From Macrostomum lignano (Eukaryota): a DNA stretch of 64,000 nucleotides. The notes under the pieces are model-generated. The model made no database searches and was not told the DNA's origin. It saw only the letters and a program-made list of their open reading frames with translations. The DNA lies in contig NIVC01000268.1 in NCBI GenBank assembly GCA_002269645.1, positions 124,001-188,000 of the forward strand, in the 5' to 3' direction. Position 1 is the stretch's first letter. Each line of letters starts with the position of its first letter. Shown here one piece after another: positions 39,121 to 64,000 of this stretch. Both the position numbers and the translations under genes were made by a program.

Positions 39121-42100
39121 TCAGGGCTTTAGCCTAGATTCCACAATGGCAGGCACCCGTGGAGCCAGATGGCCGATCCCCGCAGACGCAATGGCGATGC
39201 CAGTCAGAGGCAGCAGGGCCGTCGTCCCACTGAATATGGCAGCAAACAGACCGACTACTGTGGAGACCAGTGAGCTCACGAGACATTTCCATCGCTGGAG
39301 GTACTCATCTTCAGGCATTCCCGTCGTAGCTTTACGGAATACCAGAATAGCAGCTTCCACGGCACTAAAGCCGATGATAAACAAGAGACCCAAACCTTCA
39401 CTCCAGAATGTTTTGCCATCAGGAACAGCTGGGGTGATATCTGCAAAGAACTGAATAACTCGGTTGACTAACTTTGCGAACTTTCCGACGCCCTTGAAGA
39501 ACGACACAGCGAAAGAGGGACAAGCGGATGTCGCCCTCAGCGCCCAGTCGCTGAGCTGAAGACTCGTGAATCGACCGTAGATCAGAAAGTTCACAAAGTG
39601 CTCGCAGTTATTAAAAAACAGTTTGTAGTTCCTTGCGTCTCGACAGTCCGTGAACTTGGCATCAATCTTCTCCCAGTCGAGCTCGGTGTTGTGCACCACC
39701 TTCTTCAGCTGACCCGGTCCAGTCACTCGAAGAAATCCGTTGAACTCGTTGAATCCCATCTCCACATTCTCAGCTGGAGCTTCGTAAGTCACGCCTACAC
39801 CTGTGCACGACTCTGCATCCCATTCGACAAGAATGAAGTGCACCCTGGTCACTTTGCCTTGCACCTTACGATCCAGCACAATGTGATCGAACTGCTTCAG
39901 GCTGGAAGGCGCCACTGCATCCTCAAGAAATATGGACTCCCCAGGTCGTGAGCTAAGTGTGCCAAACTTGTCCAGCTTAGTTACTGCTTTCTTGATACCG
40001 TTCAGTTTTGTTCCAAAAAGCTTTTGAATGTCGCTGAGTCCCTCGTTTCGTCTTTTACACTTCAGCCAGTGGCAGAAGTCGTGGCTGGTGACTTTGCTGC
40101 CACACTTCGCTTCTTTCCCTGTCCAACCATGCATGTCATCGTCCGCGCTCAAGAAGGTGCAGTTAGTGAGCTGATCGATGACTTTGCTGTCGGGCATGAT
40201 TGACTTAGAGAGACTTAAATCATCGTAGTTTACTCTCTGAACTGTCTCCTGCTGACCGATTACCAAATCTTCCTTCCTGACGGTCTTGAACTGGTGGTTG
40301 TTTTCGTACAAGCGAACCTTTACTATGTCGTCGGAATCTTCAAACTTACTGCACTCTCGCATGATCGCATCGTGTGTGTACAAGTTTGGACTCTTGAGAA
40401 ACTTGATGTGACCTCTACCAAAGTTCACCAAGTCCTTTGCACGCTCGATGTCGATGCGGCATTGCTCTCGGTTGCTTCCGTGCTCGATGCTGCACCACTT
40501 GGCAAAGTCACGATCACTGTTCCACAGAAAGTCATGCTCTCGCTCACCAAGTCTTGACAACGCTCTTTCGACGACCTTGTCGGGCGAGTACTTTCTGCTT
40601 GTTTCGACATTGTAGTCGATGAGGTGTACATCCTGCTTGCTTTGCTCATCAATATCAATTTCCATACAATGAGTTTTTAATTGGAACAGTTGGGTTGAGA
40701 CAGAAAGACTCAACTTGAATGACATCAGGTTGCAGACAAGTTTTGTACCGGTATCATTTTCCACAGCTGCACCTTCTTCGCTCATTCTAGGCTGCACTGA
40801 ACCGGTTTCAATACTCGCGTGAACTGTCAAAGCGGTTGGCATCGGAGAGTCTGCCAGATCTTTATCACCTGCATTTGCTGTTCGATTTGGGTTCTCTACA
40901 AGTCGAGCAGTTTTTGTCTCTTCGGAGCTGTCACTTTCAGAAAAAGTTTCTATAACTACTGCATGCTTGAAGAAACCATACTCATTCCGAAGGCTTACCA
41001 CACAGCCTTTCTTTATTTGCTTGACGTCTGTTACCGTTGTGGCTTTGTAGCTGGGCTTCTCACGACCTCCGCCGTACAGCTCACAATCCTGGTGAACTTC
41101 GTTGTGAACGCACAGTGAAATGCGCTTTTCTTGTTTTAGAATACGGCATTTTAGCTCCATCAGTTCGCCGCTGTCGGTGGAATCTGGCCCTGGGCAGTAC
41201 TGCACGGTGCGGACTCGAGTGCCCGACTCAACTGCTCTCACATCAGTGACCACTCGGTACACGCCGTTCAAGTGAATGATGTCACCTGGCTTTGAGAGGC
41301 TAGGATTTTGTTTCCCAGTCAACACTCTAGGTTCACACTTTTTCTCTGGACCTTGCAGAGCAGCTCGTTTCCACTCATCGCCTTGGTGCTCAGTACTCAG
41401 CAGTAGCGAGCAAAACGATAAACTCGACTGCTCGGACACCGGATAAAGAACCCGGTCCAAAAATTGAGTTCGATCACTGAGGTTGATCTCCTTCTGATCC
41501 GGAACTGAAGTCACCCGACTGACGGGCTCTGTGAGCACGTGCTCACACTCGTGAACATATGGAATCCAGGCTGCTTTTCGGGTTACAATTTTAACCAGAT
41601 ACGAATCATCAAGGACCTGTTCCACATCTGTGATCTCTGCGTGAATCTTATCACCCTTACGAACTAAACATTCAATATCGACGTGATCACCGACGTTGAC
41701 AGTGTGGGTGGGATGCTCATTTGATAGGTAGATTGGAACTCGACAGCTCGGACGGTGCGTTGTTGATTCGACTTTGCACCACAAGGCAAACATTGTCGCA
41801 TTGTTGGAGATTCCGTTGTGCTCTTCTTCATTGAGTCTGCTTCGAGCTCTCTGCAGTACTGTCTGAGACGGGTAGCAGCTGGCGGGTGGAAACACATGAA
41901 GCCAACACTTTTCTGTGTTGAGTCTCAGGCTGAATTTCTCTCTGATGATCCTGTTTGGTGTGATCAAGTTCGGCCGACCGTAGTGAATGGCGTCAATTAT
42001 GATTAAGTCGGCCGGGGTGTCCGGCAGAGTCCTGACGCCCTCAACCACAACGAAGTGTAACAGCTTGTAATAGCTGAGCTCGACCACGTCTCCTGGCTTC

Positions 42101-42297
42101 AGCTTGTGCATGTTCTCCAGAGTGAGTCGGACCTTTCCTTCATCCTTGTGCTGGTTGTACAGCTCCTGATCGCCTTCGGTTACTACGTGATATTCGTTGA
42201 GCAGCGTGTTCAGCTCATCTTCAGCTTCATCGACTCCGCTCTGCTGGAGTTGCTCTGGTTGTGATTGACGGGTCTGCCTCTGCAGGCTACTTGCCAT
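39121..42297 (-). CDS. Intronless 1058-aa multi-LRAT (NlpC/P60, PLAAT/HRASLS-like) protein with hydrophobic C-terminus, copy 1
   Basis: Repeated (K/P)GDxV..H(F/A)xV..(T/V)VxxRAxSRL..NxxxxFAxWC modules; last module has YKLFFNNCEHFV (Cys898, codon 39606-39604); C-terminal hydrophobic helices. Confidence 0.88.
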   Translation of the reverse strand: MASSLQRQTRQSQPEQLQQSGVDEAEDELNTLLNEYHVVTEGDQELYNQHKDEGKVRLTLENMHKLKPGDVVELSYYKLLHFVVVEGVRTLPDTPADLIIIDAIHYGRPNLITPNRIIREKFSLRLNTEKCWLHVFPPASCYPSQTVLQRARSRLNEEEHNGISNNATMFALWCKVESTTHRPSCRVPIYLSNEHPTHTVNVGDHVDIECLVRKGDKIHAEITDVEQVLDDSYLVKIVTRKAAWIPYVHECEHVLTEPVSRVTSVPDQKEINLSDRTQFLDRVLYPVSEQSSLSFCSLLLSTEHQGDEWKRAALQGPEKKCEPRVLTGKQNPSLSKPGDIIHLNGVYRVVTDVRAVESGTRVRTVQYCPGPDSTDSGELMELKCRILKQEKRISLCVHNEVHQDCELYGGGREKPSYKATTVTDVKQIKKGCVVSLRNEYGFFKHAVVIETFSESDSSEETKTARLVENPNRTANAGDKDLADSPMPTALTVHASIETGSVQPRMSEEGAAVENDTGTKLVCNLMSFKLSLSVSTQLFQLKTHCMEIDIDEQSKQDVHLIDYNVETSRKYSPDKVVERALSRLGEREHDFLWNSDRDFAKWCSIEHGSNREQCRIDIERAKDLVNFGRGHIKFLKSPNLYTHDAIMRECSKFEDSDDIVKVRLYENNHQFKTVRKEDLVIGQQETVQRVNYDDLSLSKSIMPDSKVIDQLTNCTFLSADDDMHGWTGKEAKCGSKVTSHDFCHWLKCKRRNEGLSDIQKLFGTKLNGIKKAVTKLDKFGTLSSRPGESIFLEDAVAPSSLKQFDHIVLDRKVQGKVTRVHFILVEWDAESCTGVGVTYEAPAENVEMGFNEFNGFLRVTGPGQLKKVVHNTELDWEKIDAKFTDCRDARNYKLFFNNCEHFVNFLIYGRFTSLQLSDWALRATSACPSFAVSFFKGVGKFAKLVNRVIQFFADITPAVPDGKTFWSEGLGLLFIIGFSAVEAAILVFRKATTGMPEDEYLQRWKCLVSSLVSTVVGLFAAIFSGTTALLPLTGIAIASAGIGHLAPRVPAIVESRLKP

Positions 42298-43800
42298 TCT
42301 GAGTTCTAAAATGATAAAGTTATTAGCATATAGCTAAGGCATGTTATACACTATACTATAGTTTTGTAATTGAGTCATTGGTTTGGTTTCTTGTGCATAT
42401 GAAAGAAAAATAAAAAATCTTAAGAAGTTTTATTGTTTACAATAAGAGCTTGTTAAAATGGCAGCGCCAAGCATAGTAGTTGCATATCATTTTAAAAGGA
42501 ACTCTTTGGGACAAAGGGACTGCTTGGCTTTTTAGTAGGATAAAGTAGGATAAAGAGATAAGACTGTATTAAAGGTAGACCATTAAGATAAGAAGCAAAA
42601 TGCACTGAATAGTCAACAGAATCTTCTCATGGCTTTTGCCTTTTTGAATAGAATATACCAAATATTATAGAATAGCTAAGATAAAGTACATAAAGCATAT
42701 GTAGCTATGCTCTCTTTACACATGCAGGGGCTTAGCCAGGAATTTCCTACAGGGGGATGCACCAAGATAAATCTTCTATGGGGGGATACACCAAGGTAAA
42801 ACTGTTATGACAGTCACATGGTAACATATATAGCAACAAAGGGCAACAAAAAAAGTTTTGGTCTAGCTCTTTAGGGGGATACATCCATTTCTCCTCCCTA
42901 TGCCCCTGTACACATGCTGGTGCTCTTAGCATAGGCCTAGACCAAAATTAAATAGAAATCTAAATCAGGAACTATGCATTTTAATACATACACACAAATA
43001 CAGCCTTAATATTTAGCTACTGTTTCAAAACTTATAGCATTTTTACACAAGCTAAAAAGTAGCTAATATAGCTTAATTTGGCAAATATTCTCTACAATAG
43101 CTAAACCTAAGTGCCTGGTTTTTGCTTCCATTGGCTAGCCAAGGTAGATATAGCTATATTGAAAATTTTGGTTATGGGAAAACCCAAACTAATAGTTTTA
43201 GTCAGTAAATGAGATACTCTAAAACTAGCCTAGCTAATGCTAAAATATTATATTGGGAAATATTAAATAGATATTTCCAAGTCAAATGGTAACAAGCAGT
43301 TATTTTTAGAGCAGAAATTTTATATTAATGGCTATAAAATAGTAAAATGACATCTTATATAGCTACTTACTACACTACAAAGACTCAATTTACATCATCT
43401 AGTATAATATATATAGCTAAAAGTTTAGGCATATCTAAAATATATGCTAGGCCTATGCCTGGTATCTAAAATATATCTAAAACTTTACCTGGTTTCACTT
43501 CTGTAATGTCTCCAATCGCCGAGGGCGAGGCTCGTTCACATAATAGAAATACCACCCATCCTATAAAATCATTCAGGCTAAAGAAGTACAAGCGATGCAG
43601 AAAGTAAAAATAAGACCTGTAAATTGAGCATAAAATGCATGCATGATGATTTTAAAACATGGGACCGTAATGATCTAAAAATTTTTTTTTAATTTAAAAA
43701 AATATTTAAACAAAATTTTCCTAGAACTTTTGTAGCTGCTGTCCTAAGAAGCTTTAGAAGCCTTAGAAGCTTTAGAAGCCTTAAAAGCTTTATAAGCCTT

Positions 43801-46800
43801 TGTGACGTTGTCAGTTTAAGTAGCCCCGTCAAGGGCCGTTTTAGCATACGGTACCAAACTATAATATTGTTAATTTAATGGTCTCGTACTTTCACGTCTG
43901 ATTAAAATTGCCCAAATAATTTTAAACAACTTGCGTACATTTGTAAAGCCTCAGTACAGTACGCGATCGATAATTTCTGTTTTTCTCGCAGGCCAATAGA
44001 AAAGTCGCGCATAAATTATGTTAGTCTGAAATTAAGTTCTCCTCGCGCACCCACCCCAGCCCGCTCCTTATCAGTCCTGTCTGGCTGGGGCTCGGGGTTA
44101 GTCTGGTTTTGCGTCCCCGCCTGTAGACCTTTGCCACCCCGGCACTCCTTGTTTGCTAATTGCCTTCTCTCTCTCCGCCGGTTCTACCTCGCCTCTGCCA
44201 AGTCTCCCAAGCAAGGCAGTACGTCGCCTCGACGTCGCTATGAAGTCGCCATTGGTCGCCATCGTCGCGGGCAAATATTGGTTGCACTGTTTTAGTCGGG
44301 GTGACTTCATCTTGCGACGTAGGCTTTTATTCAAAAATTATTTGATATGCTATAGAAGATCTTATATCCTTACTTAAATCGGAATAACTTTTTATGAATT
44401 TTTAAACTAGTTGAGCTGAACTATCCTTTATTTCTACACGAAGGTTATTTGTTTGTTTGTTATACGATGGATAGTAAAATTTTCTTGATCGAAGTAGCAA
44501 AATACGAACTGTTTCTTTTGACAATAAATAAATTTACTGATTAATAGTGACAGACAGAAGCAAATAGCTAAATAATTAATTCTGTATTTGATCTCTGTAC
44601 CTTACCTTGTGTGGTATAATATTGTATGACCTTATATTTATAAGATGATAGAGGTCTGTGGTCAACTGTCTTTAACGATTATTCAAATTTACCATTTTCT
44701 TTGTGCTGTCTACATCTTAATGAGCTAACCTAATTTAATTATGCCTACCTATCTATAAATATTGTGTTGTGTTTTTGGCCAAACCAAAAGGCTTGTCAAA
44801 TCAAGTTCATAAAGTGGAGCCTGTTCCTTAGTAACCTATGATGCTATGTACACAAATGATATCATTCTGCTTACAATGACATTAGAAAGCTGGGTTTGGA
44901 AAAAGCAATAAAAATTTGACTTTAAATAGGGGAAAACAAGCAAGGGGATAATAGAGACTTTATTTTATAAGCTTAAGTTGGCCTATTATATTGTTAGGCC
45001 TTAATTTAATAATGTAGACTATTGACTAGACCTAGGCTATCTAGGCCTAATAAGATATGATTTAAAAAATTGTTTATATTTATAATAATGTACATATTAA
45101 TGTTAATAGTTAGGCCCTAACTTTATTTAATCTAATCTTTGGCCAAAATTCATATTTTGAAAATTAGTCTAATGTACTATTAATTAGGAATTTAAGAGGT
45201 TAGTTTATAAATTTTTTTTCATTTTTTAGGCCTATACTTTTATAATGACTATGTATTGGGATTGCCATTAGCATGCCATTGATTAGGCCCTATTTTGTCT
45301 ATTTCTTTTAAATTGCTTTATAATTTATGCTTTGAAAACTTTGCTTTGAAAACTTAACCAATTTCTATGTCTAACTTGGCTTTTAAGTAAGCCTATTTTT
45401 TTTGCCTTTTATCCCTTAATTTATTGATAGAAAGTAAAAAATTCGAATAAAATTATTAAATATCTAATCTTATTTTAATCTTAAATAATTATCTAATAAA
45501 TTAATAATTAAATTAATGTAACTTACTAAAAAGGCCTAGGCCCTATAAATTTTTACATTAAATAATAGCTACCTATAGATTATTTAAAATTGATTTTTAT
45601 AAGCTTTTATTCTACGTATTTCCTTGAAAAAATATTCATTTGTTGTTTCTTATATACAGATAATATATTTTTATCAAATTTTGCATTGCTGATGGCATTC
45701 TTTGCCCAAGAAGTTAAATAATGTTATGCTCCTATCATGTGCATCAGATAAGGCAATTGCAGCTAATTACAGCAGAATACCAAAGAGATTATGTCAACAC
45801 AAAGCCTGAGGAACATTCATGAGCATTAAGCAGGTCCATCAGGACATCAGCAAGACAATAACTGGACAAGTGCAGGAACTTCCATTTCTTTATTTCCTGA
45901 TGCATCTGAGTCATGATGTGGAGGACCATGGTGAAGTTGGCTGCTTTCAGTGTCCTACCATTTCCTTTTAAGAATAGTGAGTATGCTTAATGCTTAAAGT
46001 CAGATATTTCAAGTTAGAAAAATGAAACTTAATATATTTTTGCATTCGTTTTCTTTAAAGATGTCAGCAAAATTCAGAAACTGTTAAAAGATGCTTTTTT
46101 TGTCGCTTTGTGGCATCAATTTCTCAACAGCAGGATTTTGCTGGCAGTTTACCATCTAAGCCCGAAGGTTAGTTCTTCTGTCACTATGCATATTTTTGTT
46201 AACTAATATTTCTTTCCTGTTGTAAAATGATAATGTTCAGCATTGTAGTCCAATTGTCACTAATGTACTGATAAATTTCATTGCAGCATAATTGCTTTGT
46301 CCACAAGCTGTGCATGCAGTGCAGTTCTGTCGCCGGCTCCAGGACCCAGTTCTCTGCAGTCTGAATCGAGGGGGACTTGATGAGAAGGAAATGGTTCGAT
46401 TTAAGTAATAATTATGCTGCCAACATGTTGTAAGGTTTAACAGTAAAATCTGGAGCAATTTCGTTTGACACTGTTTTTTATTGTCCCTTTGACCCTTCTC
46501 AGTGAGTAAAATATCTGCACTTCAAAATGCATTTGTAAATTCAAAATCATTTGTCTTTGAGTGTAACTGTGTAAAAATTACTTTTCTGATAATAATAACT
46601 AAATTAACCAACAAAAAACCTTTTTAATTGAATTATATTGAATAATTTATAAATTCAATCAAGATATTTAACCAGAGCAAGGTAGCTTATTAATCTTCGT
46701 TTAATTTCATCTATAATCTTGGTAAAAATTAATTGAATTATGATTTCGAGATTTGCACTATATTGAAGGTGCTAAGCAATCTGTAATAGATGGTCGCCGT

Positions 46801-47319
46801 TTGGTCGCCAGTACGTGAAATTCTGACGTCGCCTGGGGTCGTAATGGCGACGTCGCCGCGCGCGACAAAATGGCTGGTTTGGCGACGTTATTTTGCGACG
46901 TGTTAGCGACGTCGAGGCAACGGCATTGCTTTGACTGGGCTCAGTCACGCCACCTCTACTGTCTGTACGAGCTCTCGCTACGAGCACCGCCACCGTACGT
47001 TCACCACCATCACATCGTCACCATTGCCTCAGGCTCATATCGACTCACTCTATCGTCTATCATCTAACTTATTGTTGCGTAGCCGCCCAGTGCATTTCTT
47101 ACGAATCCAGCAAGTACTTAATTGACCTATCTCTGTTGACCGCCCAGACAGAATTAATAATAGCAAGCCTTAACTGTCCTCTCATACGTTACAATAAATA
47201 AAGTCTGCGGCCATCGCCCGCATCAGTCGTTATTATCATCAAGTGCTACCGCTATAAATTTGCATCTGCCGTATTTGTCTTCGTTGATTACTTTCGAGGC
47301 CACCGCATTAATCGTCACA
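43801..47319 (+). mobile_element. Solo LTR (~783 bp after removing the nested element), TGTGACG...CGTCACA, 4-bp TSD CCTT
   Basis: 7-bp inverted termini, CCTT on both sides (43797-43800 and 47320-47323), AATAAATAAA near the 3' end. Confidence 0.8.
44206..46939. mobile_element. CMC/EnSpm-like DNA transposon (non-autonomous or degenerate) nested in the solo LTR
   Basis: Termini CCCA...TGGG, imperfect TIRs containing GCCTCGACGTCGCTA, repeated subterminal GTCGC motifs, 2-bp TSD CT; no intact transposase ORF. Confidence 0.78.
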
Positions 47320-48138
47320 CCTTAAAAGCTTTAGAAGCTGCTGTCCTGAAGGAACATTATTCTTCCAAGAGTTCAATAATGCTATCCGCCAGATTCCGAG
47401 CTTTCAACAACACGTTTGCGTACAGGAACCCGGCAGTCTCACTCGATTACATGTGATGCAGGTATGTATTTACTGGAATAAAAGCTGCCTCGGTGCATTG
47501 CAAACTCTGGACGGATTAGCTAGACGGATCCAAATGGATTAGCACTCGATCTGGACGAGAGGCTAGCCTGCGCGACCAGCTAGCTTGTATTCGGTCTCCG
47601 CAGCGACGTGCACTGTACAAAAGCTGCTAGAGATTGAACAGCCCGACTTCAAGACGCTTGTTGTGTCGACGCATTGGAAGCAGCGGAGAAGATCGTCGTC
47701 GGAGATGGCTCACCAGGCTGAAGCGCAGTTGCCTTCACAAGAATCAGCCTAGAATGCGCCAAAGAGGTCGACAAGCAGGTCGTCCCCGTCAATCATTTGG
47801 AGCTCAAAATTCGGCAGCAGTGCAAGCTTCTTGAGGCCAAGTGCCACAACTACGGAAAAGTTGGGCACTGCATGCACATCCGTAAGGTGTAGTAGTTCTA
47901 ACTGCACAAATTGAATCCAGAGCCGCTGAGCTCTTCAGCATTAGACAGAGCGGGTCGAGCAATGGTCTGGCGATCGATCGAGCTGCTGCTCCAAGGCAAG
48001 TCATGTCGCTTCGAGGTGGATACACTGGCTCCGCCCTCACCATCATCTCGAAGTGCTTCCAGGAGGATGCTCTGCCAGGTCTCAGTCTGTCGTCCACATT
48101 CACGGTGTTGCAGACCTACACAGGCGAGACCTTCCGAC

Positions 48139-50060
48139 TGTAGTGAGTGAAACGAGGCTAGACTGCTTGTTGTAGTCGATAGTTGCCGAAAGCTTGCAGG
48201 CGAGAAAAATAGCGATCAGTATGTTTATTGAATTATTGAGCTGAGTCAGAATGGTGGCTAAAGTCGCACCCTGCACATTTGATATTGTACGCATAAGGGT
48301 TGAGCTAGCAGAGTCACGTGGCGCAGCCGCTAACAACCCCCCCCCCAACACACACGATAGTAGGCGCTGCCTTCTCCCCCAAAGGAATTAAAAAAACTTC
48401 GAACTAAAGAAAATTAACTGTTTACGAAGTACACCGCTTCAGCTTGATCGTTATGTCGGATCAATTACTTAACTCGTATAGCACTTCAGCGTGTCGCGGG
48501 CTGCTCTTGGATGCCGTCTCTGAGCCACAGACTCTGCTTCTTGACTAGCGGTCTGGCTGGCAGACTGACCGGCTGGCTGGCCGGCTGACTGGCCGGCGGA
48601 CTGGTCCGACGGTTCCATCAGAGGCCGCAGCTGGGTCACGTGCCGCATACAAGACTGCTGGCCTCGCCGTAGGATGCAGGTGTCGCCTCGAATCTCCTGC
48701 ACCGTCCATGGCTGAGTTTCGAATGGCAGCTGCGTTTTCTTGCGTGCCTGCTGCTTGCGAAGAACACTCATGCCGGGAACGATGCGGTGCTCCTTTGAGG
48801 CCGTGCGCCTGTCGAACGCACTCTTCATCTGCTGCGTGTACCGCCTGTTCCAGTCCTTCACGGCTTCCTGGCTGACATCAGATGACTTCGGCTGTCTGCT
48901 GGCTCGGATTCCGTCGTTGATCGGCCTGCCCATGAGGAGCTCGGCCGGAGTCTGCCCAGTTGCTCGGTGAGGCGTTGTACGGAACGCCAGAAGCCAGTCG
49001 TCCAGGGCCTCTCTCCAGTTCCGACCTTCAGCGACAGCAGTCTTCACCACCTTCCCGATGCATGCTGTTGACACGCTCGGTGGCTCCGTTGGAGTCCGGA
49101 TGCAGTGGACAGATGAGCCGATGATGAACTCCGTATCCGCTGAGGAAGCTGCGAAAGTTGGCAGAGTTAAAGGGCGGTCCCGTTGTCCGTGATGACCTCA
49201 GCAGAGATGCCGTGCCGACCGAACAGCCGTCTCAGATGCGGTGTCACGTTGCCGGCCGTCGTTGACTGCATGATGTCGACTTCCGGGTACTTGGAGTACA
49301 GGTCCGTGGTGACCAGCAGCATCTGACCTTGCACCGGGCCGTAGAAGTCCATGCCGAGCAGTTGCCAAGGTCCGTCCGGCAACTACGTCGGCTTCAAAGG
49401 CGTCTGGTGCACGTGCGTGGCCGCTGCTTGGCAACCGACACAGCACTTGACGAATACTTCGCAGTCGCTGCGCATCTTTGGCCACCAGACTTTGGTCTGC
49501 AGTCGCTTCAGGGTTCTGTCCGCACCGAGATGTCCCGTATGGGCCAGCTGCAGAATCGGTCTCTGCAGCGACTCGGGGACAACGATGAGATCTCCGCGGA
49601 GCAGAATTCCGTCGCTCTCGGAAAGTTCGCTGCTGCTGGACTTTAGTGCGCGTTGCACCGGGTCGAGCATGTTCCAGCTGCCGGTTCTGATCGCGCTGAG
49701 CGCAGCCTGGATCTCCGTGTCAGTCCTTGAAGAGTCTCGGATCTGCTGAAGGCTGGATTCCTTTTGGCACGGCACCTGCTGACACGGCACTGACGAATGC
49801 TGCATCGATGAACTCGCCGATGTTTGGCCTGGGCTCCGGTAACGGCTGGCGGCTCAGCAGATCAGCCTGATTGGCAGGTCCCGGCCGGTACAACAAAGTG
49901 AAGCGGAGGTGCTGGATGCGGAGGGCCATCCGCTCGATGCGCGGCGGAGGGCGGGACCCCGGTTTGAAGAGCGGCACAAGAGGTCGATGGTCCGTCATGA
50001 CGGTGAAGTTCGGATCGCCTGCCAGATAATGCTCGAACTTCAGGCAGGCGATGGAGACTG
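48139..50060 (-). mobile_element. 3' half of a second Ty3/Gypsy element B (RH end, integrase, PPT, 197-bp 3' LTR at 48335-48139)
   Basis: TVMTDHRPL; IN zinc finger AHTGHLG..WWPKM..CVGCQ; core MDFYGP, DLYSKYPEV, TDNG; poly-G PPT; LTR TGTTA...CTACA with AATAAA; frameshifted. Confidence 0.9.
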
Positions 50061-51092
50061 AGGAGACTGAGGATGGAGATTGGCGGCATCATCACGCCCC
50101 TTAAACATTCCGACTGGGCTGCGCCGATAGAATGGTTCGGTGAGGATCTGCGGCGACTACAAGCTCACCTATAACACATAATCCAGGGCAGAGCTGTACC
50201 CACTGCCGCGCATTGAGGACTTATTTGCAAGCGTAGTGGCGGCTGCAAATGGTTTAAGCTGAACATATCAGACGCCTTCCTGCAGCTGCCGTGGTCTGAG
50301 GACAACAAGCCCTTCTTGAACGCACCAACCAGTGCGGCTCCAACGCACGCTAGCTCCCCACTCGGTGATCTGGAGCGCTGCGTGTCTTCGCATCCTGGTG
50401 ACGGGCAAAACGCTGCAGCATCATAGCGATAATCTTATCCTTATCCTTCAACGCCTACAGGAGGCGGGCATACGGCTGAACAAGGACAAGTGCAAGTTGT
50501 TCCGCTATTCGGTCGAATATCTGGGCCACCGGATCGACAGCAACGGACTGCGGCCGCTGGCGAAGGTGACGACGGTGCAGGACGCCTCGCTACCCTTGGA
50601 CTGCAGTCAGCTCCGAGCTTACCAGGGCATATTTTGACACACTACGGCAAGTTCCTGCCTCATCTGTCCACGGTGGTCGCTCCCATGAATCAGCTGCTGA
50701 CTAAGAACGCGCGCTGGACACGGGGGAGCCTCAGCAACAAGCCTTCGAGAAGTCCAATCATCTTTTGCTCGAGTCCCTGGAGCTGAAGCATAATGCATTA
50801 CGATGTTAAGCTGCCGCTGCGGCTCGAGTGCGAAGCCAGCCCCTATATCGTCTCGGCGTGATGCTGACGCACCGAGTGGACGGCAAAGATCGAACAACTG
50901 CCTTCGCCAGTCGTAGCCTGACGACAGCTCAAAAGGCTACTCGCAGTTGGACAAGGAGGCGCTATAGCGATCATGTTCGGCCTCCAGCGCCTCAACCAGT
51001 TTCTCCAAGGTCGCAAGTTCGTAATCGCGACCGACAACAAGGCTTCTTCGGCGAAAACAAGGCGATTTCAGAGCACGCGGCTGCTCGCATGC

Positions 51093-51393
51093 TGTTTAGG
51101 AGAAGGCTTTATTTACACGTACTTGTACTTTCATTCACCTACGCGTACTCTTCATATCATAATTTTTTGTATACGTACATTTCAGCCCAGCCCCCATTTA
51201 CGAGTATAATGTTCAGCAGCACCCACCCCATTTATTTATAGGAATTGATTTTTGGTCAAATTATTGCAATATAGTTGTCAGGCTCTCCAGGGAGAGTTTT
51301 CACTTCTGGTTTTTTTGTTCGTTTGGCTAGTAGCCGAAAAAATGTCGCTTATGTACTGCGAAGACTCAATTTATTGCATGAACCATCAAAACA
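51093..51393 (-). mobile_element. 301-bp solo LTR-like insertion (TGTTT...AAACA, 5-bp TSD CATGC) containing a spliced-leader-like sequence
   Basis: Removing it restores the host frame GCT CGC ATG CAG CGC. On the minus strand there is a TATA-like TATAAATA at mid-element and AATAAA near the 3' end, so orientation is tentative. TACTGCGAAGACTCAATTTATTGCATG at 51354-51380 on the plus strand. Confidence 0.8.
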
Positions 51394-52329
51394 CATGCAG
51401 CGCTGCATGGGCGATCCGCTTGGCCGGTTTCGGCTACTCGCTGGAGTTCCGGCCCACCAGCAAGCACGCCAACTGCGAATCGCTGTTCTGGCTGCTGAGG
51501 AGGAGCCGGCCTTCAACGCCTTGCTGCTGGGTGTGGAAACCGGGTCCGCCTTAACGCCCCAGGCGGTTGAGCGCAGCACTCGCTCGGACGCCATTCTCGG
51601 TCAGGTGCTTCGCTGTCTGCAAACCGGCTGCGCTGCGCTGATTGAGTTCACTAGGCGCAACGAATTCGGCACATTTTCTCAGCGACGTTCTATCTGGCAA
51701 CGAACGGCAATTCGGGAGGTTTGTCCAAATTCTCATGCAATCTGCTCAAGAGTGGGCACTCAATGGCGACACTGCAGCAGTTTCAAGTCGGCGACCTAGT
51801 TGTACTTCGCGACTTCAGCTCCAACGCAAAAGGCTGGCGGCGGCACCTGCTGGGCGGAGGGCAGCGTTGTGTCCGATGGATCCCGCAATTGCGATGTTGA
51901 GGTCCATCTCCATCGGCGGCACACGGACCAGCTGTTAACGAGCTCACTAACCCGGTGCCGCCAGCAAAGATGTCTCCGAAGAGCCACCTCCGGCCGGCCA
52001 GTCCACCAAAGGCGTTACATGCAGCGTCGGACGCAGCCAACTGACACGCTTGCAACTTCGATCTTGAATTTGAACTGACTGCGACGCGAACGAACTTTGC
52101 TGGCGGATGACTTGAACTCATGATCACTCAGGGGGGTGATTTCAGATATCTTAGCTTAGTCATTACTTGATCTATTACTTATGGCATTGGCCACCACTAA
52201 GTAGCTCTTTTTAGTTCAAGTTCACCCTTACCACCCCAGCGTCGGGGTTTGAGTTATCCAATTTAGCTCTCTCTCTCTGTGTGAGTCAGTGCGGCACCCA
52301 CCCCTATAATCTCTATCTACGCTGAGAGT

Positions 52330-52481
<152 letters not shown>

Positions 52482-52731
52482 AATTCTATTATTAATAGAC
52501 TATTTTGCTCCTTTTCGTTTATTTTTTTCTTAACTTGCCATTTATTAAATTGTCAAAAGCAAGTACATGTAGGGCAAAAGAGATAAAACAACAAGCTGTT
52601 CAAATGGTGGCAAAGTCTTCTTCTTATAAATGTACTGTACATCTGCAAAATCAAAGATTTTAAGGATTTAGGTCGTGAAGTCATGTTTGTGGAATTATTA
52701 TTTCGACGCTTTCCTTGTCGCAGTGGACTCA

Positions 52732-54746
52732 TCAACCATCAAATGCAGCTCTAGACGACGCCGAAGCATTTGACGAAGATGAGTTCATTCGATGCAGACG
52801 TCTCTGGGCACTTTCCACCGTCAGCCCGACCAAGCGAACAGCTGTCAGATGCAATTGAGCGGCATCGGCGGCCGCGGACAGACTCTCCGACACTACTTGA
52901 TCAGCCAGGGTTGTCAGCATCTTCTCCGCAGCTTCATCAACCCGAATTTCTTCCGGGTCAACAGCGACAGAAAAGGGGGTCTCTGGCGACGGAGGCGGCG
53001 GTGGCTGGATGACTCGATGGATCTGGGCTGCGCTTGGTCGAATTGGTGGCAGACGTTGCCTTCTGTGCTGGTGAAGCACCCTTTCCTGCTGCTGCTGCTG
53101 CTGCTTGAATGTTTCCTCGTCCATTGGAAAGCGTCGCAGTCGAGGCGCCCGCTGCGAAGCGCTGTACATTTGTCGCAACGCCTGGTTGCCTTGACTCCAA
53201 GCGTCGTAGATACTGCAACAGGCTGGAGTTGAAGACAAAAGGGACAATAAATTTGACTATTGAGTTACATTGTAAGCAACTAACTTTATTGAGCACGTAC
53301 TCGAACTGTGACGCTGCCGCAAGTCTGTTATAAGTGACTCGTCGACTTCAAGCTGAAATGAAATTATAGGCAACAGTGGGTGATACTTCTGAAAAAGTTA
53401 TTGCTACAGTCAAGTAAAATGTCGTTAACGTACATGTATATTACATAAGCAATAACATGATTAGTATGCAAAGAACTTGTGAAGCGGAAAAACTCCTTAA
53501 AATCTTTTGGAGTACCATGTCCACTATATGGGTGATGTGTTAGTTTTTAACAGTCGACCAGCAGCTAGGAAGGATGCAACCATTAATGAGCTGCGGCTCT
53601 CCGGCCGCCAAATGGTTGTGAGTTTGAATAAGCGCCCATTAAGTGCAGAGAGGGAGATTTCCCTTTTTTATTAGAGACAGGGGCTGTGTGCACCCTAGCT
53701 GCCGCGCACTTTAAGCGAAATTGTCACACAACCGGCGAGAGGCATTGCTGCCCATTCCGCCGACTCCCCTGAGCAGGAACACAAGCGCGCGGATACGTAC
53801 GCAGTCGTACCACTGTACACCCCACACACTCACACAGGGGTGTACAGTGGTCCTATCTTTATTTATCGTTAGGCATGTACACTTAGGCAAGAACATGTAA
53901 TCAGAGCGCTGCGTTAGACTCTACGGCTCTTACGGCAGATGCAAAAACCACCCTTCACTCAGAGTTGAACAGGCCCAGTAGTGAGAGTGAGTGCAGACTT
54001 CCAAGAGTGAGTGCACATTACCAAGCGTTGAATGCAACTGCAGCATCCACTAGCATCACTAGCATGGCACCAACTTCTGGGGCTAATGTAATCCAGATGG
54101 GCCTTTCTGGGACAAGGCCTTTATACAGTCTATTTACCAGCTTCATACAGGGGTGAGGGTCGTACCGGTATGGCGAGTAGGCAGTTCCAAGCGCTAGGGA
54201 CGGTCTACTTCCTAAAAATTTATGGCAGCTCAGAATCACCAGTGGAACTCGTCAGTTAGCTGGTGGGACACTCGTGCAAGCCTTCTTCAGGGCATTTAGG
54301 GTGCTTGAACACAAAATACAGGGGAATTGATTTTTGCCTTTGTACACGGGCCCTAAATTAATGTGGCCACAGACGGAATCGAAGCCAGGTCCTTTGACGC
54401 GAGTCATATGTGTTACTGCTGAGATACACTCTGTCCGCCTGGATAATGGCTTCTCAGGCCAGTTTTGATATGGGGAAAAAGACAACTCATTCTTCGCATA
54501 GTGGATTAATAACTGATGGACCGAGGCGCCTCCTTGCCGTAGCTCTGACCGCCCCTATATTTGCTGAGTTCCACTAACTTTCATTTACACTCAGGCGACG
54601 CTCACCACTTTGGCGATATCGTCGCAACGCAGGGTGACAAGCTCCTCAAGCATGACAGTCTTTTCTCGTTCCAGTTCGGTGAATTCGCCGCCAACACCAA
54701 CGTCTGCTGCACTTTTGACAGCCACCTTCGAGGAATGCTGCGACAT
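52732..54746 (-). CDS. 3-exon orphan protein, 227 aa, with death-domain-like N-terminal segment and Q/P-rich linker; exons 54746-54606, 53352-53301, 53222-52732
   Basis: ATG after an in-frame stop; donors GTGAGC and GTACGT; acceptors TTTCAG and CTCCAG; phases 0 and 1 give one continuous 684-nt frame. The domain call is pattern-based only. Confidence 0.65.
53680..53888 (-). mobile_element. SINE family A, headless 3' half
   Basis: Near-identical to 5395-5585. Confidence 0.8.
54250..54440 (-). mobile_element. Degenerate tRNA-headed SINE (different family)
   Basis: Minus strand TATCTCAGCAGT (A-box-like) ... GGCTTCGATTCC (B box); single copy in the window. Confidence 0.5.
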
Positions 54747-55285
54747 TCCCGTATAGTCTGTTGTGATTCAACTGCTGGAAAAATGCAATAATCTGTGTGT
54801 AGCCTGCAAGAGCTGCAGAAAAAACAGACAGCCAAAATAGTCTTTCTTACCCTCGACTCTCTTCACTCGCTCCTTTTATCTGATTGTACACTCAGGGGTA
54901 GAACTGCTAACGCTTGTCTCTATGACAACAGTCTGGAGCAAGGGGCAGTAAGGTGAAGGCACACAAAACATATTATACAGCTCCTCTTCATAAGTTTATA
55001 GTTGTTATCGACGCTCTCTAACTTGAACACAGATTCCACAACGAATGTCATGCAGAAGTTGTACATAGATGTCTTTCTTAGTACCTTATAAAAAACACAA
55101 AACTGTTCGGGTGTATAATTATGGCAAAAAACGAAAAATTAGGTATCAAAGTCAAGTGTAAAGAAAAGATTTTTTTCGAATTCTAGCTCTCGAATTCTAT
55201 AGATCCCAAAAAAGGGACGTTCATCAAAGCAGGTAAGATTCTAATCTACGAGTATTAAAAACCTTAAAAAACTTACTCGTCTGCT

Positions 55286-58009
55286 CCCAGTGAAAAATGA
55301 TTCATGGATTCCACGTGGGTTCCACGTGGCCATGTGGAATTTAAACGTTTCTTTTATTTTTGCAAATTAATGAATTAAAGATTACATAATGGTATGCAAA
55401 GTATTTTTTATGCATTAATTTTCTATTTTTACTATCCTAATGTAGATGTGGATTTTACAAGGAATTCATCAGAAATACGCGTATATTGATTCAACATGGA
55501 ATCCACTTCGATAAAAAACTGAGATATACTACATTCAGATGTTTTTATAAAATTAATTAATTTAATTATTATATTTATGTGCTTTTAAGTAAAACTTAAT
55601 AACTTTAAGCTGAATTATATTGGAAAAATTAGACGCTGTTTGTTAAAATAGACAAAATAGAAGTGGACAGTAAAAAATGTTTCGTGCTTTTTAAAATTAA
55701 ATTTATTTTATTTTTATTCGTCAATGTGTAAATACCCAAGTCGCCGTTTGAAATACGAGTGACGAAGTCGTGCAGGCAATTCTTGTCGGCTGTGCTCACT
55801 TAGCCGAGGGGAGAAAGTCTTAAAGATTCCTGCTCAAACCATTAATGTATTTATAACCATTGGCGATGTTTTGCAGACAGCGTGCGAGGCTTAAAAGCGT
55901 AATTCACGCGCGGGAATAAAATCAATTCCAGAACACATTCAAATATATGGAAACTAAGCGAGTCGGAGAAAAGAATGCGACTGCGCAACAAATTAAGTCA
56001 GCAGGGTGCACAGTGCGTACGGTACGGGGAAAGGACAACTTGTTACAAATGTCTTGGTTCAAGGCCTTGAAAGATAAATTGCCTTGTTTATGGCTATTTA
56101 AGCACCTTATAAATTTTAGTAGGCCTAACCTATAGGCAACACTTATAAGGCCATGGCCTCCATGGGATTCAAAATTAGATAAATCGGTATTTTTTCATAG
56201 ATAGGCTACTTTTAGTAAAATTCATGATAAAATTATTTATCCAATTTCTAGGAATCCCATGGCCATGCCCATAGTTTAGATACTCATTTTTAACTTCAAT
56301 AGGCCTACAGAAGCTCATAACTTCCTCTTAGGCCTAGTCCTACCTATCTGTTTATATGTATGGTTATTAGGCCTATTTTAAGCCATATCTATCAAGTTAT
56401 GTCTTTCTATTTTAATCATACATGCGCAACCTTGGGAATCACCCGGCCGTTTCTAATGGCAACACGCACATGTAAGTCGCTATTGGCTGAGAGCAGTCAC
56501 GTGACTACTATTCCGTCCAATAGCGACTTACATGTGTGTGTTGCCAATAGAAACGGCCGGGTGAATCCCTAGGTTGCGCCCAAGCATGATTTTAATTAAG
56601 GTTAGGTAGCCTGACTTTGTGAATTGAGTAGTTAATCTAGCTATTCAGTTAAATCTATTAAATTATGATTTTCTGCAAGAAAGCCTGTTAGCATCTTTTG
56701 GACTTGTTGCATTTTTAAAAACAATGTTTTTAGATCTAATAAATAAATTCTTTGCAATTATACTTGCAACTTGCTTTTGGCATAACTAGCCTAGCAGCTA
56801 AAGTTGTTATTATGAATAAATAATGATTATTGTAAATTTGATCAGATGTAGGGCTAGGCCAAGTCTAGAATTTAATAGCCATGGGGCATAATGCCTATTT
56901 AGACTTAGGCCTAATGTTTTATCATAGGCCCTACTAGCAAATAAATGGAACTTGCATTGTTTTGCCTAAAAACTATATGGTCTAGAACCAATTTTAAAAT
57001 AAAAAAATTAAATCTATAAACATATATAATAATAATGTCTGTACTCATTATTTTATTGGTATTTCTATTTATTGACTTAGGCCTTGTTACTTTTGAAATA
57101 GTCTTTATTAAGTATTCATCCTTAAAAGTATACTAATATAATTTATCAATCTTTAAGAATTTATCAATTGGCAAGAACTATTTTTTTGTTTCATTTCAGC
57201 CTAACATCACGTGGCTTATCCTGAAACTTGAGTATCACCTTGGTCTTGCCTTTCAAGAAGCAAGCAAAGCTACTTGGAATTTGAATTTAATATCCAGAAT
57301 GCTACCTTTTGTGAAGCAGTGGTAAGTTTTAGTTACAAACTGATTTTTTTCCGTCATCAAAATGTACATTTATCTGTTATCCACAGATACTTAATAAAAT
57401 TCTGTAATTTAACTCATTTCTTTTCTAAGGTTTCTCACCTGACCTGAAGAAGCAGCATTCTGGCAATTGGCAGCAGCTTGTTTCTGAGTGTTCTAATTCT
57501 GGTGCATTATAAAATAATATTGTTAATTAATGCTATTGACAATGTCAGTTTCAAATTATATATTATATCATATGCGCAACTCTAAAGGTATCAATATCTA
57601 CATCAGTGTGTTTATTCTTTGTGTGCCAGTGACTTACTACTGGACATAAATACACCTTACTTATTGAGGCATCCTTTTTGAATATATTTTTGTGCAGAAA
57701 TACTTTTTGGCTTTAGTGTTTTTATCTGTGTTTCAGTTTTTTTATATGGTATTGAGATCTGGGGTTTGTATGAAATTTTGAGATCTGGTAATATTTTGAG
57801 ATTTAAGATGCAACAATTTATTATGGCAACCAGTATAATGGCTGCTAATCAATGACAATGTGGATTCTATGTGAAATACATAATTACTTCCATGTGGATC
57901 TTCGATGTGGAATCCATATCTTGATTCCACATGGATGGACGGAGACAAATGCACATATGGATTTCATATGAAAAATCTACATGGAATCCATATCATTTTT
58001 TTCACTGGG
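55286..58009. mobile_element. Second CMC/EnSpm-like non-autonomous DNA transposon
   Basis: TIR CCCAGTGAAAAA..ATGGATTCCA at both ends, subterminal (A)TGGA(A/T)TCCA repeats, 2-bp TSD CT. Confidence 0.8.
56413..56592. repeat. ~180-bp inverted repeat (hairpin/MITE-like)
   Basis: Arms GCGCAACC..CACCCGGCCGTTTCT..CACATGTAAGTCGCTATTGG and their reverse complement, around a short spacer containing GTCACGTGAC. Confidence 0.85.
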
Positions 58010-58144
58010 CTGTATCGAACTTTAACTAAAAAATTCGTAAGTACTTCCATCACGGCTTTTAAAGATTTTCTTTTGATTAAAAGGTACTCTCCCGCTTACT
58101 AAAAATTCATTTGTATTGAACTTGTAGAAAAAGAAATCAGAAAG

Positions 58145-61100
58145 ATGGCAAGTAGCCTGCAGAGGCAGACCCGTCAATCACAACCAGAGCAACTCCAGCA
58201 GAGCGGAGTCGATGAAGCTGAAGATGAGCTGAACACGATGCTCGACGAATATCACGTGGTAACCGAAAGCGATCAGGAGCTCTACAACCAGCACAAGGAT
58301 GAAGGAAAGGTCCGACTCACTCAGGAGAACATGGACAAGCTGAAGCCAGGAGACGTGGTCGAGCTCAGCTATTACAAGCAGGTGCACTTCGTTGTGGTTG
58401 AGGGCGTCAGGACTCAATCTAACACACCAGCCGACTTTATCATAATCGACGTCATTCACTATGGTCGATCGAACTTAATCACACCGAACAGGATAATCAG
58501 ACAGAAATTCAGCCTGAGACTAAACACAGAAAAGTGCTGGCTTCAAGTGTTTCCGCCCGTTAGCTGCTACCCGTCTCAGACAGTGCTGCAGAGAGCTCGA
58601 AGCAGACTCAATGAAGAAGAGCACAACGGAATCTCCAACAATGCGAAAATGTTTGCCTTGTGGTGCAAGGTCGAATCAACGACTCACCGTCCGAGCTGTC
58701 AGGCTCCAATCTACCTGTCGAATGAGCACCCAACCCACACTGTCAAAGAAGGTGATCACATCGAAATCAAATGTCCATTCGGTAAAGTTCATGCAGAGAT
58801 CACAGATGTGGAACAGGTCCTTGATGATTCGTATCTGGTTACAATTGTAACCCGAAAAGCAGCCTGGATTCCATATGTTCACGAGTGTGAGCACGTGCTC
58901 ACAGAGCCCGTCAGTCGGGTGACTTCAGTTCCGGATCAGAAGGAGATCAACCTCAGTGATCGAACTCAATTTTTGGACCGGGTTCTTTATCCGGTGTCCG
59001 AGCAGTCGAGTTTATCGTTTTGCTCGCTACTGCTGAGTACTGAGCACCAAGGCGATGAGTGGAAACGAGCTGCTCTGCAAGGTCCAGAGAAAAAGTGTGA
59101 ACCCAAAGTGTTGCCTCGGAAACAAAATCCTAGCCTCTTAAAGCCAGGTGATATCATTCACTTGAACGGCGTGTACCGAGTGGTCACTGATGTGAGAGCA
59201 GTTGAGTCGGGCACTCGAGTCCGCACCGTGCAGTACTGCCCAGGGCCAGATTCCACCGACAGCGGCGAACTGATGGAGCTAAAATGCCGTATTCTAAAAC
59301 AAGAAAAGCGCATTTCACTGTGCGTTCACAACGAAGTTCACCAGGATTGTGAGCTGTACGGCGGAGGTCGTGAGAAGCCCAGCTACAAAGCCACAAGGGT
59401 TACAGACATTAAGCAAATAAAGAAAGGCCGCGTGATAAGCTTTTGGAATAAGTATGGTTTCTTCAAACATACAATAGTTATAGAAACTTTTTCTGAAAGT
59501 GACAGCGCTAAAGAGGCAAAAACTGCTCGACTTGTAGAGAACCCAAATCGAAGACCAAACGCAGGTTTTAAAGATTTGGCAGAGTCTCCGATGCCAACCG
59601 TTTTCACAGATCAAGCGAGTATTGAAAGCGGTGCAGAGAAGGCTAAGAGTTTTCAAGAAGGGGCGGCTATAGAAAATGTTACCGGTACAAAACTTGTCTG
59701 CAAATTGATGTCATTCGTGTTGAGTCCTTCTGTCTCAACCCAGCAATTTCAATTAAAAACTCATTGTATGGAAATTGATATTGATGAACAAAGTAAGCAG
59801 CATGTACACCTCATCGATTACAATGTCGAAGCAAGCAGAAAGTACTCGCCCGACAAGGTCGTCGAAAGAGCATTGTCAAGACTTGGTGAGCGAGAGCACG
59901 ACTTTCTGTGGAACAGTGATCGTGACTTCGCCAGGTGGTGCAGCATTGAGCACGGAAGCAACCGAGAGCAATGCCGCATCGACATCGAGCGTGCAAAGGA
60001 CTTGGTGAACTTTGGTAGAGGTCACATCAAGTTTCTCAAGAGTCCAAACTTTTATACACACGATGCGATCATGCGAGAGTGCAGTACGTTTGAAGATTCC
60101 AACGACATAGTAAAGGTTCGCTTGTACGAGAACAACCACCAGTTCAAGACCGTCAGGAAGGAAGTCTTGGTCATCAGTCAGCAGGAGACAGTTCAGAGAG
60201 TAAACTACGATGGTTTCAGTCCCTCTGAGTCAGTCATACCCGACAGCGAAGTAATTGATCAGCTCACGGACTGCACTTTCTTGAGCGCGGACGATGACAT
60301 GCGCGGTTGGACAGGGAAGGAAAAGAAGTGTGGCAGCAAAGTCACCAGCCACGACTTCTGCCACTGGCTGAAGTGCAAAAGACGAAACGAGGGACTCAGC
60401 GACATTCGAAAGCTCTTTGGAACAAAACTGAAGAGTATCAAGAAAGCTGTGACTAAGCTGGACAAGTTTGGCACACTTAGCTCGCGACCTGGGGAGTCCA
60501 TATTTCTTGAGGATGCAGTGGCGCCTTCCAGCCTGAAGCAGTTCGATCACATTGTGCTATATCGTAAGGTGCAAGGCAAAGTGACCAGAGTGCACTTCAT
60601 TCTTGTCGAGTGGGATGCAGAGTCGTGCACAGGTGTAGGCGTGACTTACGAAGCTCCAGCTGAGAATGTGGAGATGGGAATCAACGAGTTCAACGGATTT
60701 CTTCGAGTGACTGGACCGGGTCAGCTGAAGAAGGTGGTGCACAACACCGAGCTCGACTGGGAAAAGATTGATGCGAAGTTCAAGGACTGTCAAGGCGCAA
60801 GGAACTACAAGCTGCTGTTTAATAACTGCGAGCACTTTGTGAACTTTCTGATCTACGGTCGATTCACGAGTCTTCAGCTCAGCGACTGGGCGCTGACGCC
60901 GACATCCGCTTTTAAGGGCGTCAGAAAGTTCGCAAAGTTAGTCAACCGAGTTATTCAGTTCTTTGCAGACATTACCCAGCCGTTCCTGATGGCAAAACAT
61001 TCTGGTGTGAAGGTTTGGGTTTCGTTTTTATCATTGGCTTCAGCGTCGTGGAAGCTTCTGTTCTGCTATTCCGCAAAGCTACGACGGGAATGCCTGAAGA

Positions 61101-61287
61101 TGAGTACCGCCAGCGATGGAAATGTCTCCTGAGCTCACTGGTCTCCAAAGTGGGGGGTCTGTTGGCTGCCATTGGCATTGGGACGACAGCCGTGCTGCCT
61201 CTGACTGGCATCGCCATTGCGTCTTCGGGGATCGGCCATCTGGCGCCACGGATACCAACCATCTTGGAAACCGGGAGGAAGCCCTGA
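58145..61287 (+). CDS. Multi-LRAT protein copy 2; ~1047 aa if the 1-bp deletion at 60975-60977 is corrected, otherwise 995 aa with an altered C-terminus
   Basis: Colinear paralog of 39121-42297; NNCEHF intact (Cys codon 60827-60829); homologous C-terminus continues in the +1 frame to TGA at 61287. Confidence 0.85.
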
Positions 61288-63886: not shown

Positions 63887-64000
63887 TTTAGGCTTGGGGC
63901 TTTGGTGGCTGATCGAAAACCCTTTGCCAGCAGCTGAAGAGCTCTCGAGAGTGACGTGAGCAATCTTCATCCGCCCGGAGTTCCGGACGAATGTGCCATA

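Follow-up and report, generated by a model that had tools for sequence, protein, structure and literature searches.

Multi-LRAT proteins of Macrostomum lignano: one PLAAT-like module behind LRAT-derived modules without a nucleophile, followed by predicted membrane helices

Introduction

LRAT/PLAAT enzymes are small single-domain proteins. A 64,000-nucleotide stretch of the flatworm Macrostomum lignano (GenBank assembly GCA_002269645.1, contig NIVC01000268.1, positions 124,001 to 188,000 of the forward strand; hereafter the window, in whose own numbering positions are given) carries two genes, copy A and copy B, that face each other and encode chains of six LRAT-like modules. What can a chain of such modules be for, and do the two genes work as a pair? 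An earlier note, made from the letters of this DNA, had proposed one active domain behind several dead ones, then hydrophobic helices, in two genes arranged like paired immune receptors. Its core was borne out: we found one catalytically plausible LRAT/PLAAT module behind an LRAT-derived array that lacks the nucleophile, with membrane helices after it. Judged from sequence, the product is probably a membrane-anchored PLAAT-like lipid acyl-hydrolase or acyltransferase with a pseudo-LRAT scaffold, encoded by an inverted duplicate that gene conversion has kept similar.

Results

Six modules with LRAT homology

The two gene copies are:

39121 to 42297, minus strand: copy A, an intact single-exon open reading frame (ORF) of 1058 amino acids (aa)
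58145 to 61132, plus strand: copy B, an ORF of 995 aa with six modules as in A and the motifs NNAKMF, NSDRDF, TSHDF and NNCEHF

The GenBank gene BOX15_Mlig011640g2 ('LRAT domain-containing protein') is identical to copy A except at two residues. No protein record was found for the exact copy A product of the window, and the 995-aa B product had no entry in the protein collection searched. Module boundaries were set with hidden Markov models (HMMs) of the paralogs (aa 56-185, 187-317, 324-420, 422-612, 613-760 and 792-919 of A) and agreed closely with the six that the earlier note had drawn by eye. The modules of A, with the evidence for each in brackets, are:

41743 to 42132, minus strand: module 1, aa 56-185, full LRAT-like; His81 and His105 kept, Ala167 for Cys (Pfam, hhalign, secondary structure)
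41347 to 41739, minus strand: module 2, aa 187-317, degenerate LRAT-like; His219 in strand 2, Ser292 at the Cys position (hhalign, secondary structure)
41038 to 41328, minus strand: module 3, aa 324-420, a beta-only half with strands 1-5 and no Cys helix (hhalign, jackhmmer)
40462 to 41034, minus strand: module 4, aa 422-612, LRAT-like; disordered insert of ~60 aa (456-516), Asp595 for Cys (Pfam, hhalign)
40018 to 40461, minus strand: module 5, aa 613-760, full-length divergent LRAT-like; His643 kept, Ser738 for Cys (hhalign, jackhmmer, secondary structure)
39541 to 39924, minus strand: module 6, aa 792-919, PLAAT-like; His820 and Cys898 (NNCEHF), Tyr838 replacing the second His (Pfam, PDB profile match)
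39604 to 39606, minus strand: codon of Cys898, the putative nucleophile

The Pfam LRAT model (PF04970) matched the whole proteins at 52.5 bits (A) and 57.6 bits (B), the cutoff being 24.3. Matching stretches of A lay only in modules 1, 4 and 6: in a scan by segments, aa 65-177 covered model positions 2-117 of 120, while aa 563-614 and aa 877-905 matched the C-terminal part of the model. PF04970 did not match the segments of modules 2, 3 and 5 of A, nor did Pfam detect an LRAT domain in module 2 or module 5 of any paralog when these segments were scanned. A phmmer search of PDB sequences with the whole A protein returned no match.

We then compared profiles by hhalign, using module profiles built from flatworm paralogs only and a reference profile of 289 LRAT-like domains, none of them from a flatworm. 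Cys-bearing members of the reference set match the structures of PLAAT3, PLAAT2, PLAAT4 and an HRASLS3-LRAT chimera (E ~5e-7), so the set represents genuine LRAT/PLAAT domains. Modules 1 and 4 aligned at a probability of 99.9% (109-114 columns) and 99.7% (116-118 columns), module 5 at 95-96% over its full length (111-112 columns), module 6 at 95% over the C-terminal part (43-45 columns), module 3 at 90-92% over the N-terminal strands only (38-39 columns) and module 2 at 83-88% (80-99 columns). For all six modules the real score was higher than that of every one of 41 decoys (one reversed and 40 block-shuffled per module), with 35.6 against a decoy maximum of 25.9 for module 2, 35.5 against 29.0 for module 3 and 49.2 against 24.8 for module 5. 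With a profile of the active, Cys-bearing type as reference, module 5 reached 90.9%, module 3 69.5% and module 2 63.6%. jackhmmer linked module 6 with module 5, and modules 1, 4 and 6 with each other; from module 2 it reached only module 2 of its own paralogs.

AlphaFold2 gave no usable model from the single sequence of A (predicted local distance difference test, pLDDT, 33). With a 19-sequence paralog alignment the mean pLDDT was 70, and most module cores were at 80-90. Module 1 was predicted to form strands 71-76, 79-89, 98-107, 116-125 and 132-134, then helices 144-153 and 167-175. The same order of five strands and two helices was predicted for module 2 (from 205-209 to 292-299), module 4 (433-437 to 595-603, with the insert 456-516 disordered), module 5 (629-634 to 738-747) and module 6 (805-812 to 898-907), and five strands without helices for module 3. 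In the model, the conserved His falls in strand 2 for His81 (module 1), His219 (module 2), His643 (module 5) and His820 (module 6, within the predicted strand 815-827), and Ala167, Ser292, Asp595, Ser738 and Cys898 each stand exactly at the N-terminus of the second helix. A strand-2 His and a Cys at the helix start are the arrangement of the family's permuted NlpC/P60 fold (PMC5133064).

Could modules 2 and 3 have another origin, as independent SH3/Tudor-like barrels inserted between true LRAT domains? Neither has a Pfam or PDB sequence match, module 3 consists of strands only, and the weak Foldseek matches of the whole A model were to tandem Tudor, BAH, SAWADEE, Sm-like and SH3-like barrels. 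Against such an origin, both profiles align in register with the N-terminal LRAT strands (PGD-strand 1, His/strand 2) and outscore all 41 decoys. Module 2 moreover has both helices, with an F-C-x-h-L motif that matches the Cys-helix of module 5, and a jackhmmer search started from module 3 finds module 1, in its N-terminal half. We consider inserted barrels quite unlikely. That modules 1-5 are LRAT-like is supported, all of them scoring above their decoys, with the caveats that module 3 is a beta half only and that modules 2, 3 and 5 have no direct Pfam or PDB match. The architecture described in the earlier note is real, well beyond chance.

Catalytic residues

A Cys at the nucleophile position is present only in module 6 (Cys898, NNCEHF). 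The position is taken by Ala167 in module 1 (NNATMF), Ser292 in module 2, Asp595 in module 4 (NSDRDF) and Ser738 in module 5 (TSHDF), and it is missing from module 3. These motifs had been read correctly, as had VTYE in module 6 (Tyr838). Among the paralogs the Cys position holds Ala in module 1, is variable in module 2, and holds D/S/G/R in module 4 and S/D in module 5. Modules 1, 2, 4 and 5 have no Cys at the nucleophile position and so cannot be cysteine enzymes. In A they too keep the first triad His, and module 1 has a second His (His105) but no Cys.

In module 6, NCE is invariant in seven aligned paralogs down to 23% identity, with variation in the His and Phe that follow; NCEHF as a whole is near-invariant, and in this module only. 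His820 is kept in six of the seven, the exception being P0003, which has Asp. The module 6 profile matched PLAAT2 (4DPZ) in the PDB at E 1.7e-8, and PLAAT2/3/4 and the LRAT chimera at E 1.7e-8 to 6e-4. The family uses a Cys-His-His triad (PMC10318531) and a mechanism with a thioester intermediate (PMC5133064). Doubt had been raised over the second His of module 6, and it was justified, the residue being Tyr or Phe in all seven paralogs.

This replacement bears on whether module 6 is a pseudo-enzyme as well, which would make the protein a wholly non-catalytic membrane scaffold, a structural or adaptor protein built of LRAT-fold bricks. In favour of a scaffold, no paralog keeps the second triad His (it is Tyr or Phe instead), P0003 has Asp in place of His820, and the nucleophile is clearly lost in five of the six modules. 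Vertebrate LRATD1/2 are examples of LRAT domains that persist without the Cys (PMC5133064, 'Cys/Ser' in a figure legend). A scaffold role does not, however, fit the conservation of NCE and NCEHF in module 6 of paralogs as low as 23% identical, or the ratio of nonsynonymous to synonymous substitution rates (dN/dS) of this module, which at 0.22 is among the lowest. For NlpC/P60 enzymes, moreover, a nucleophile, a His and a polar residue in third place suffice, and Glu (Glu839 in A) or Asp comes directly after the Tyr/Phe in most paralogs. We regard a wholly non-catalytic protein as possible, though unlikely.

Membrane region

The C-terminal region of A is:

39130 to 39414, minus strand: three hydrophobic helices, the predicted membrane anchor, aa 962-1056 (hydropathy, AlphaFold2)

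Hydropathy places the hydrophobic segments at about aa 969-987, 1005-1023 and 1028-1046, and AlphaFold2 the helices at 962-992, 996-1023 and 1031-1056. The hydrophobic helices expected after the last module are thus present and number three. A long amphipathic helix lies between module 6 and these segments. A has no N-terminal signal-like segment and starts with a hydrophilic stretch, so the N-terminus is predicted to face the cytosol. The three hydrophobic segments are found at conserved positions in the flatworm paralogs and in the bivalve proteins described below. In an iterative profile search, aa 780-1058 aligned end to end with the N-terminal ~280-290 residues of the bivalve relatives; coming from an iterated profile, this is suggestive only of homology between the flatworm and bivalve helices.

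Paralogs and bivalve relatives

Among the 113 relatives that an exhaustive HMMER search returned, M. lignano paralogs were the closest, with the six-module architecture at no fewer than 12 loci. Per-module HMMs showed that all paralogs, even those only ~25-38% identical, keep the order of modules 1 to 6 followed by the helices. The gene model P0003 (1379 aa) contains modules 1-3 twice and may join two genes into one, since its gene range covers two module-6 units. Word-indexed homology search was far less productive: even with a 13-sequence profile it returned only the query itself, one paralog and one short match, and with aa 781-1058 it returned nothing. The paralog P0002 carries six tandem 12-aa units (AVEGVRTLPDTP) at aa 96-167 (L001 ~10286-10500); this array sits between strands 2 and 3 of module 1 and is absent from A and B.

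More distant relatives are found in bivalves (Mercenaria, Potamilus, Mytilus spp. and Dreissena) and in unnamed transcript assemblies. The order is permuted in the bivalve proteins, with an active LRAT domain and three helices first and then 3-9 LRAT repeats. Of 102 proteins of this type, 74 have Cys in the first domain, and 120 of 188 later domains have Ser. Most of the downstream repeats in the bivalve relatives P0008-P0034 (e.g. P0009 aa 324-1385) combine both triad His with Ser (motif N-R-S-x-H/D-F), and 123 of the 289 non-flatworm domains are of this His-His-Ser kind; judging by these residues, the site in such repeats may be of a serine type and active, not dead.

Flatworm and bivalve proteins share a common plan, in which each chain has several LRAT-like domains and one Cys-bearing domain adjoins three hydrophobic helices. 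Databases label all the relatives hypothetical, uncharacterized or 'LRAT domain-containing', and a literature search for the gene identifiers and for multi-LRAT architectures found no description. The suggestion that the architecture is undescribed therefore stands for the literature searched, but the architecture is not unique to this locus, being present at the other M. lignano loci and in the bivalve family. Within a known enzyme family it represents a novel arrangement of domains, which bivalves share in permuted form.

Inverted duplication and gene conversion

The A and B proteins are 87% identical over aa 1-971. At the DNA level the two genes form one inverted repeat (39120-42307 against 61288-58132, 91.9% nucleotide identity) that runs from ~10 nt upstream of the ATG to one base past the stop codon, with unrelated flanks. 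The head-to-head orientation was confirmed, the 5' ends facing each other across:

42298 to 58144, no strand: spacer between the 5' ends of A and B, 15.8 kb, with degraded retroelement pol fragments at ~48.4-51 kb

The retroelement remnants (window 48469-51000) are GC-rich (55-58%); the pol debris consists of an ORF with an integrase zinc-binding domain (minus strand) and a reverse transcriptase fragment (plus strand), both broken. With retroelement debris for a spacer, there is no sign of a promoter common to A and B. Other loci of the family are head-to-tail, with four units at L003 2836-21439 and two at L002 4950-12665, and the P0002 locus is a singleton with no partner within 10 kb. The divergent layout is therefore particular to this locus, and its partners are not differentiated.

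The P0002 locus (L001 6184-16627) is syntenic with the B locus (window 51778-54982 and 58009-63960). Their flanks are 96-97% identical but the coding sequences (CDS) only 90% (dS 0.21), which makes the CDS about three times as diverged as the flanks. A shares only the CDS with B or P0002. Informative sites among the three form a block mosaic (in alignment nt): nt 2401-2700 group A with B (70 sites against 7 and 6), nt 301-600 favour A with P0002, and the 3' end favours B with P0002. The site pattern indicates probable gene conversion among paralogs, of which such a mosaic is a signature, and conversion would explain why homology ends at the CDS borders. We rejected an origin of copy A as a transposon or retrocopy, since no transposon-type terminal repeats, direct or inverted, were found flanking A or B and no poly(A) was found past either stop codon.

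About 2.8 kb upstream of B (window 55188-58009) are absent from the syntenic P0002 locus, and an inverted repeat with 63-nt arms (window 56424-56579) lies inside this stretch.

Between A and B, dS is 0.15 and dN/dS 0.36. With dN/dS at 0.36-0.41 there is no surplus of replacement changes, and pairwise values are below 1 in every module (0.16-0.61); every module is under purifying selection.

The GenBank contig NIVC01003294, compared with the window, differs in A at two residues (W132C and R619C). It also has a 5.9-kb non-coding insertion (L004 4106-9963), absent from the window, at window 42333/42334, that is, 37 nt upstream of the ATG of A; inside the insertion a 184-nt repeat forms two arrays that seem to be oppositely oriented. 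Given the insertion and the two residue changes, the window represents another assembly or haplotype than this contig.

Copy B and the receptor-pair question

The C-terminal end of copy B differs from that of A:

60974 to 60975, plus strand: frameshift site of B, one base short in the C-run at 60975, relative to A and P0002
60975 to 61287, plus strand: C-terminal anchor of B in the shifted frame, open to the homologous stop at 61287, with the hydrophobic helices still encoded

Compared with the same two sequences, B also lacks 9 nt (aa 212-214) and 24 nt (aa 926-933), two losses that leave the frame intact. The block with the out-of-frame anchor (aa 921-1058) has a dN/dS of ~0.5. Given this value and the still open frame, the frameshift arose very recently unless it is an error of the assembly; a real frameshift would leave B without its membrane anchor.

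The earlier note had seen in this locus a sensor-plus-effector immune device, in which dead modules would sense a ligand or act as decoys and release a membrane-lytic PLAAT domain, the divergent genes being a receptor pair. The family has indeed expanded in a lineage-specific manner in M. lignano and in bivalves, a CDS ~3x more diverged than its flanks together with mosaic conversion is often seen in diversifying families, and PLAATs are linked to membrane rupture. The likeness to paired immune receptors nevertheless found no support. Rather than differentiated partners, A and B are duplicates that share their motifs and 87% of their residues; 15.8 kb with retroelement remnants separate them, and other loci of the family do not keep the head-to-head layout. 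Nor did Pfam scans of the A and B proteins reveal an immune-type domain, the dN/dS of 0.36-0.41 leaves no replacement excess, and B would lack the anchor if its frameshift is real. We judge the immune device very improbable, and gating by dead modules as 'sensors' or 'decoys' is purely conjectural.

Other features of the window

An intact ORF at 2132-3580 (plus strand) encodes an FKBP-type prolyl isomerase with C-terminal TPR repeats (FKBP_C, E 6e-41). The stretches 29778-30296 and 32455-32958 (minus strand) are exons of a gene whose product has TGS and tRNA_SAD domains; GenBank annotates this gene, downstream of A, as a 382-aa TGS protein. Micro- and minisatellites are dense at 12428-13294, 14286-15232, 15994-16877, 17334-18464, 19041-20481, 21804-22933 and 27251-28728. 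Their units include (CTAA)217, a 60-nt unit x16 at 97% identity, 20-nt units x45 and x72, a 36-nt unit x30, (AGTT)282 and a 31-nt unit x47, and they give rise to long spurious ORFs.

Discussion

In the reading that we prefer, internal duplication has produced a chain of LRAT-derived modules, four of them complete but without nucleophile, one reduced to a beta half and the final one PLAAT-like. The final module and the helices would work like a PLAAT/HRASLS enzyme anchored in the membrane: Cys898 would attack the acyl ester of a glycerophospholipid to give a thioester, and the acyl group would then pass to water (phospholipase A1/2 activity) or to a lipid acceptor. Because Tyr or Phe replaces the second triad His, this activity may be low or altered. 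The modules without nucleophile are kept in order across paralogs of ~25-38% identity with dN/dS below 1, suggesting a non-catalytic role, which could be lipid or protein binding, oligomerisation or autoregulation; in this they resemble the pseudo-enzymes LRATD1/2 of vertebrates. The head-to-head layout would be a by-product of inverted duplication and gene conversion, not a functional pairing.

Several observations weigh against a membrane-anchored enzyme of this kind. The second triad His of module 6 is Tyr/Phe in 7/7 aligned paralogs (Tyr838 in A), and as P0003 lacks His820 too, the 'live' module may itself be inactive. For modules 2, 3 and 5, profile-profile scores and predicted secondary structure support the NlpC/P60 fold without proving it; PDB sequences searched with the profiles of these three modules gave nothing relevant, and Foldseek with the whole 1058-residue model found nothing in the PDB below E 0.05 and no PLAAT structure. 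The membrane-helix region was modelled at low confidence (pLDDT 41-57). Copy B, for its part, may be a decaying gene.

One can go further and imagine a flatworm and bivalve class of membrane-anchored PLAAT-like effectors, in which a cassette of an LRAT domain and three helices would be controlled by the pseudo-LRAT array, with lipids, acylated ligands or pathogen proteins as possible binding partners of its modules. Diversifying by tandem and inverted duplication and by gene conversion, such proteins could form a spiralian system of membrane damage or organelle clearance, with a possible use in defence. We think this extension decidedly doubtful.

A family of 5-10 concatenated copies, with the nucleophile in just one and that one fused to a multi-helix anchor, would be a clear natural case of a pseudo-enzyme array around a live enzyme. 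The flatworm family offers a handle on how PLAAT activity is regulated or targeted, and M. lignano is amenable to RNA interference and transgenesis, making direct testing possible. The His-His-Ser repeats of bivalves raise a question of their own, whether LRAT domains of the Ser type, human LRATD1/2 among them, are in fact inactive.

Comparison with known systems

The closest known relatives of module 6 are PLAAT1-5/HRASLS (4DPZ, 4DOT, 7ZOM). The likeness covers the region from alpha1 to the Cys-helix (NCEHFVN.L.YG...S.Q, E 1.7e-8), the catalytic His in strand 2 and a hydrophobic C-terminal anchor after the domain. PLAATs, however, are single-domain proteins of ~160 aa with one C-terminal helix and a Cys-His-His triad, whereas the flatworm protein has Tyr/Phe for the second His, three hydrophobic helices and ~790 residues of degenerate LRAT modules upstream. 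LRAT belongs to the same Pfam family (PF04970) and acts at the membrane through a thioester acyl-enzyme (PMC5133064). The flatworm protein differs from it in architecture and has no LRAT-specific insert that would suggest retinol specificity, and M. lignano is an invertebrate without the vertebrate visual cycle.

The vertebrate proteins LRATD1 and LRATD2 (FAM84A/B) have the LRAT fold with Ser for Cys, like modules 2 and 5 and most bivalve repeats, but they are single-domain soluble proteins and do not form arrays fused to an active domain and membrane helices. In plants, head-to-head pairs of NLR immune receptors resemble A and B only in the divergent orientation of two related genes; NLR pairs are functionally differentiated, have a short common promoter region and keep their arrangement in orthologues, none of which holds for A and B. 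The bivalve proteins (Mercenaria XP_053378500, Potamilus KAK3603616, Mytilus XP_076105740, Dreissena KAH3867275) are multi-LRAT with one Cys-bearing domain and three hydrophobic helices, as in the flatworm. Their repeats resemble modules 1 and 4 in the RARSRLGE helix and the N-x-S/A motif, but unlike the flatworm modules they keep both His together with Ser, and they include no counterparts of modules 2, 3 and 5.

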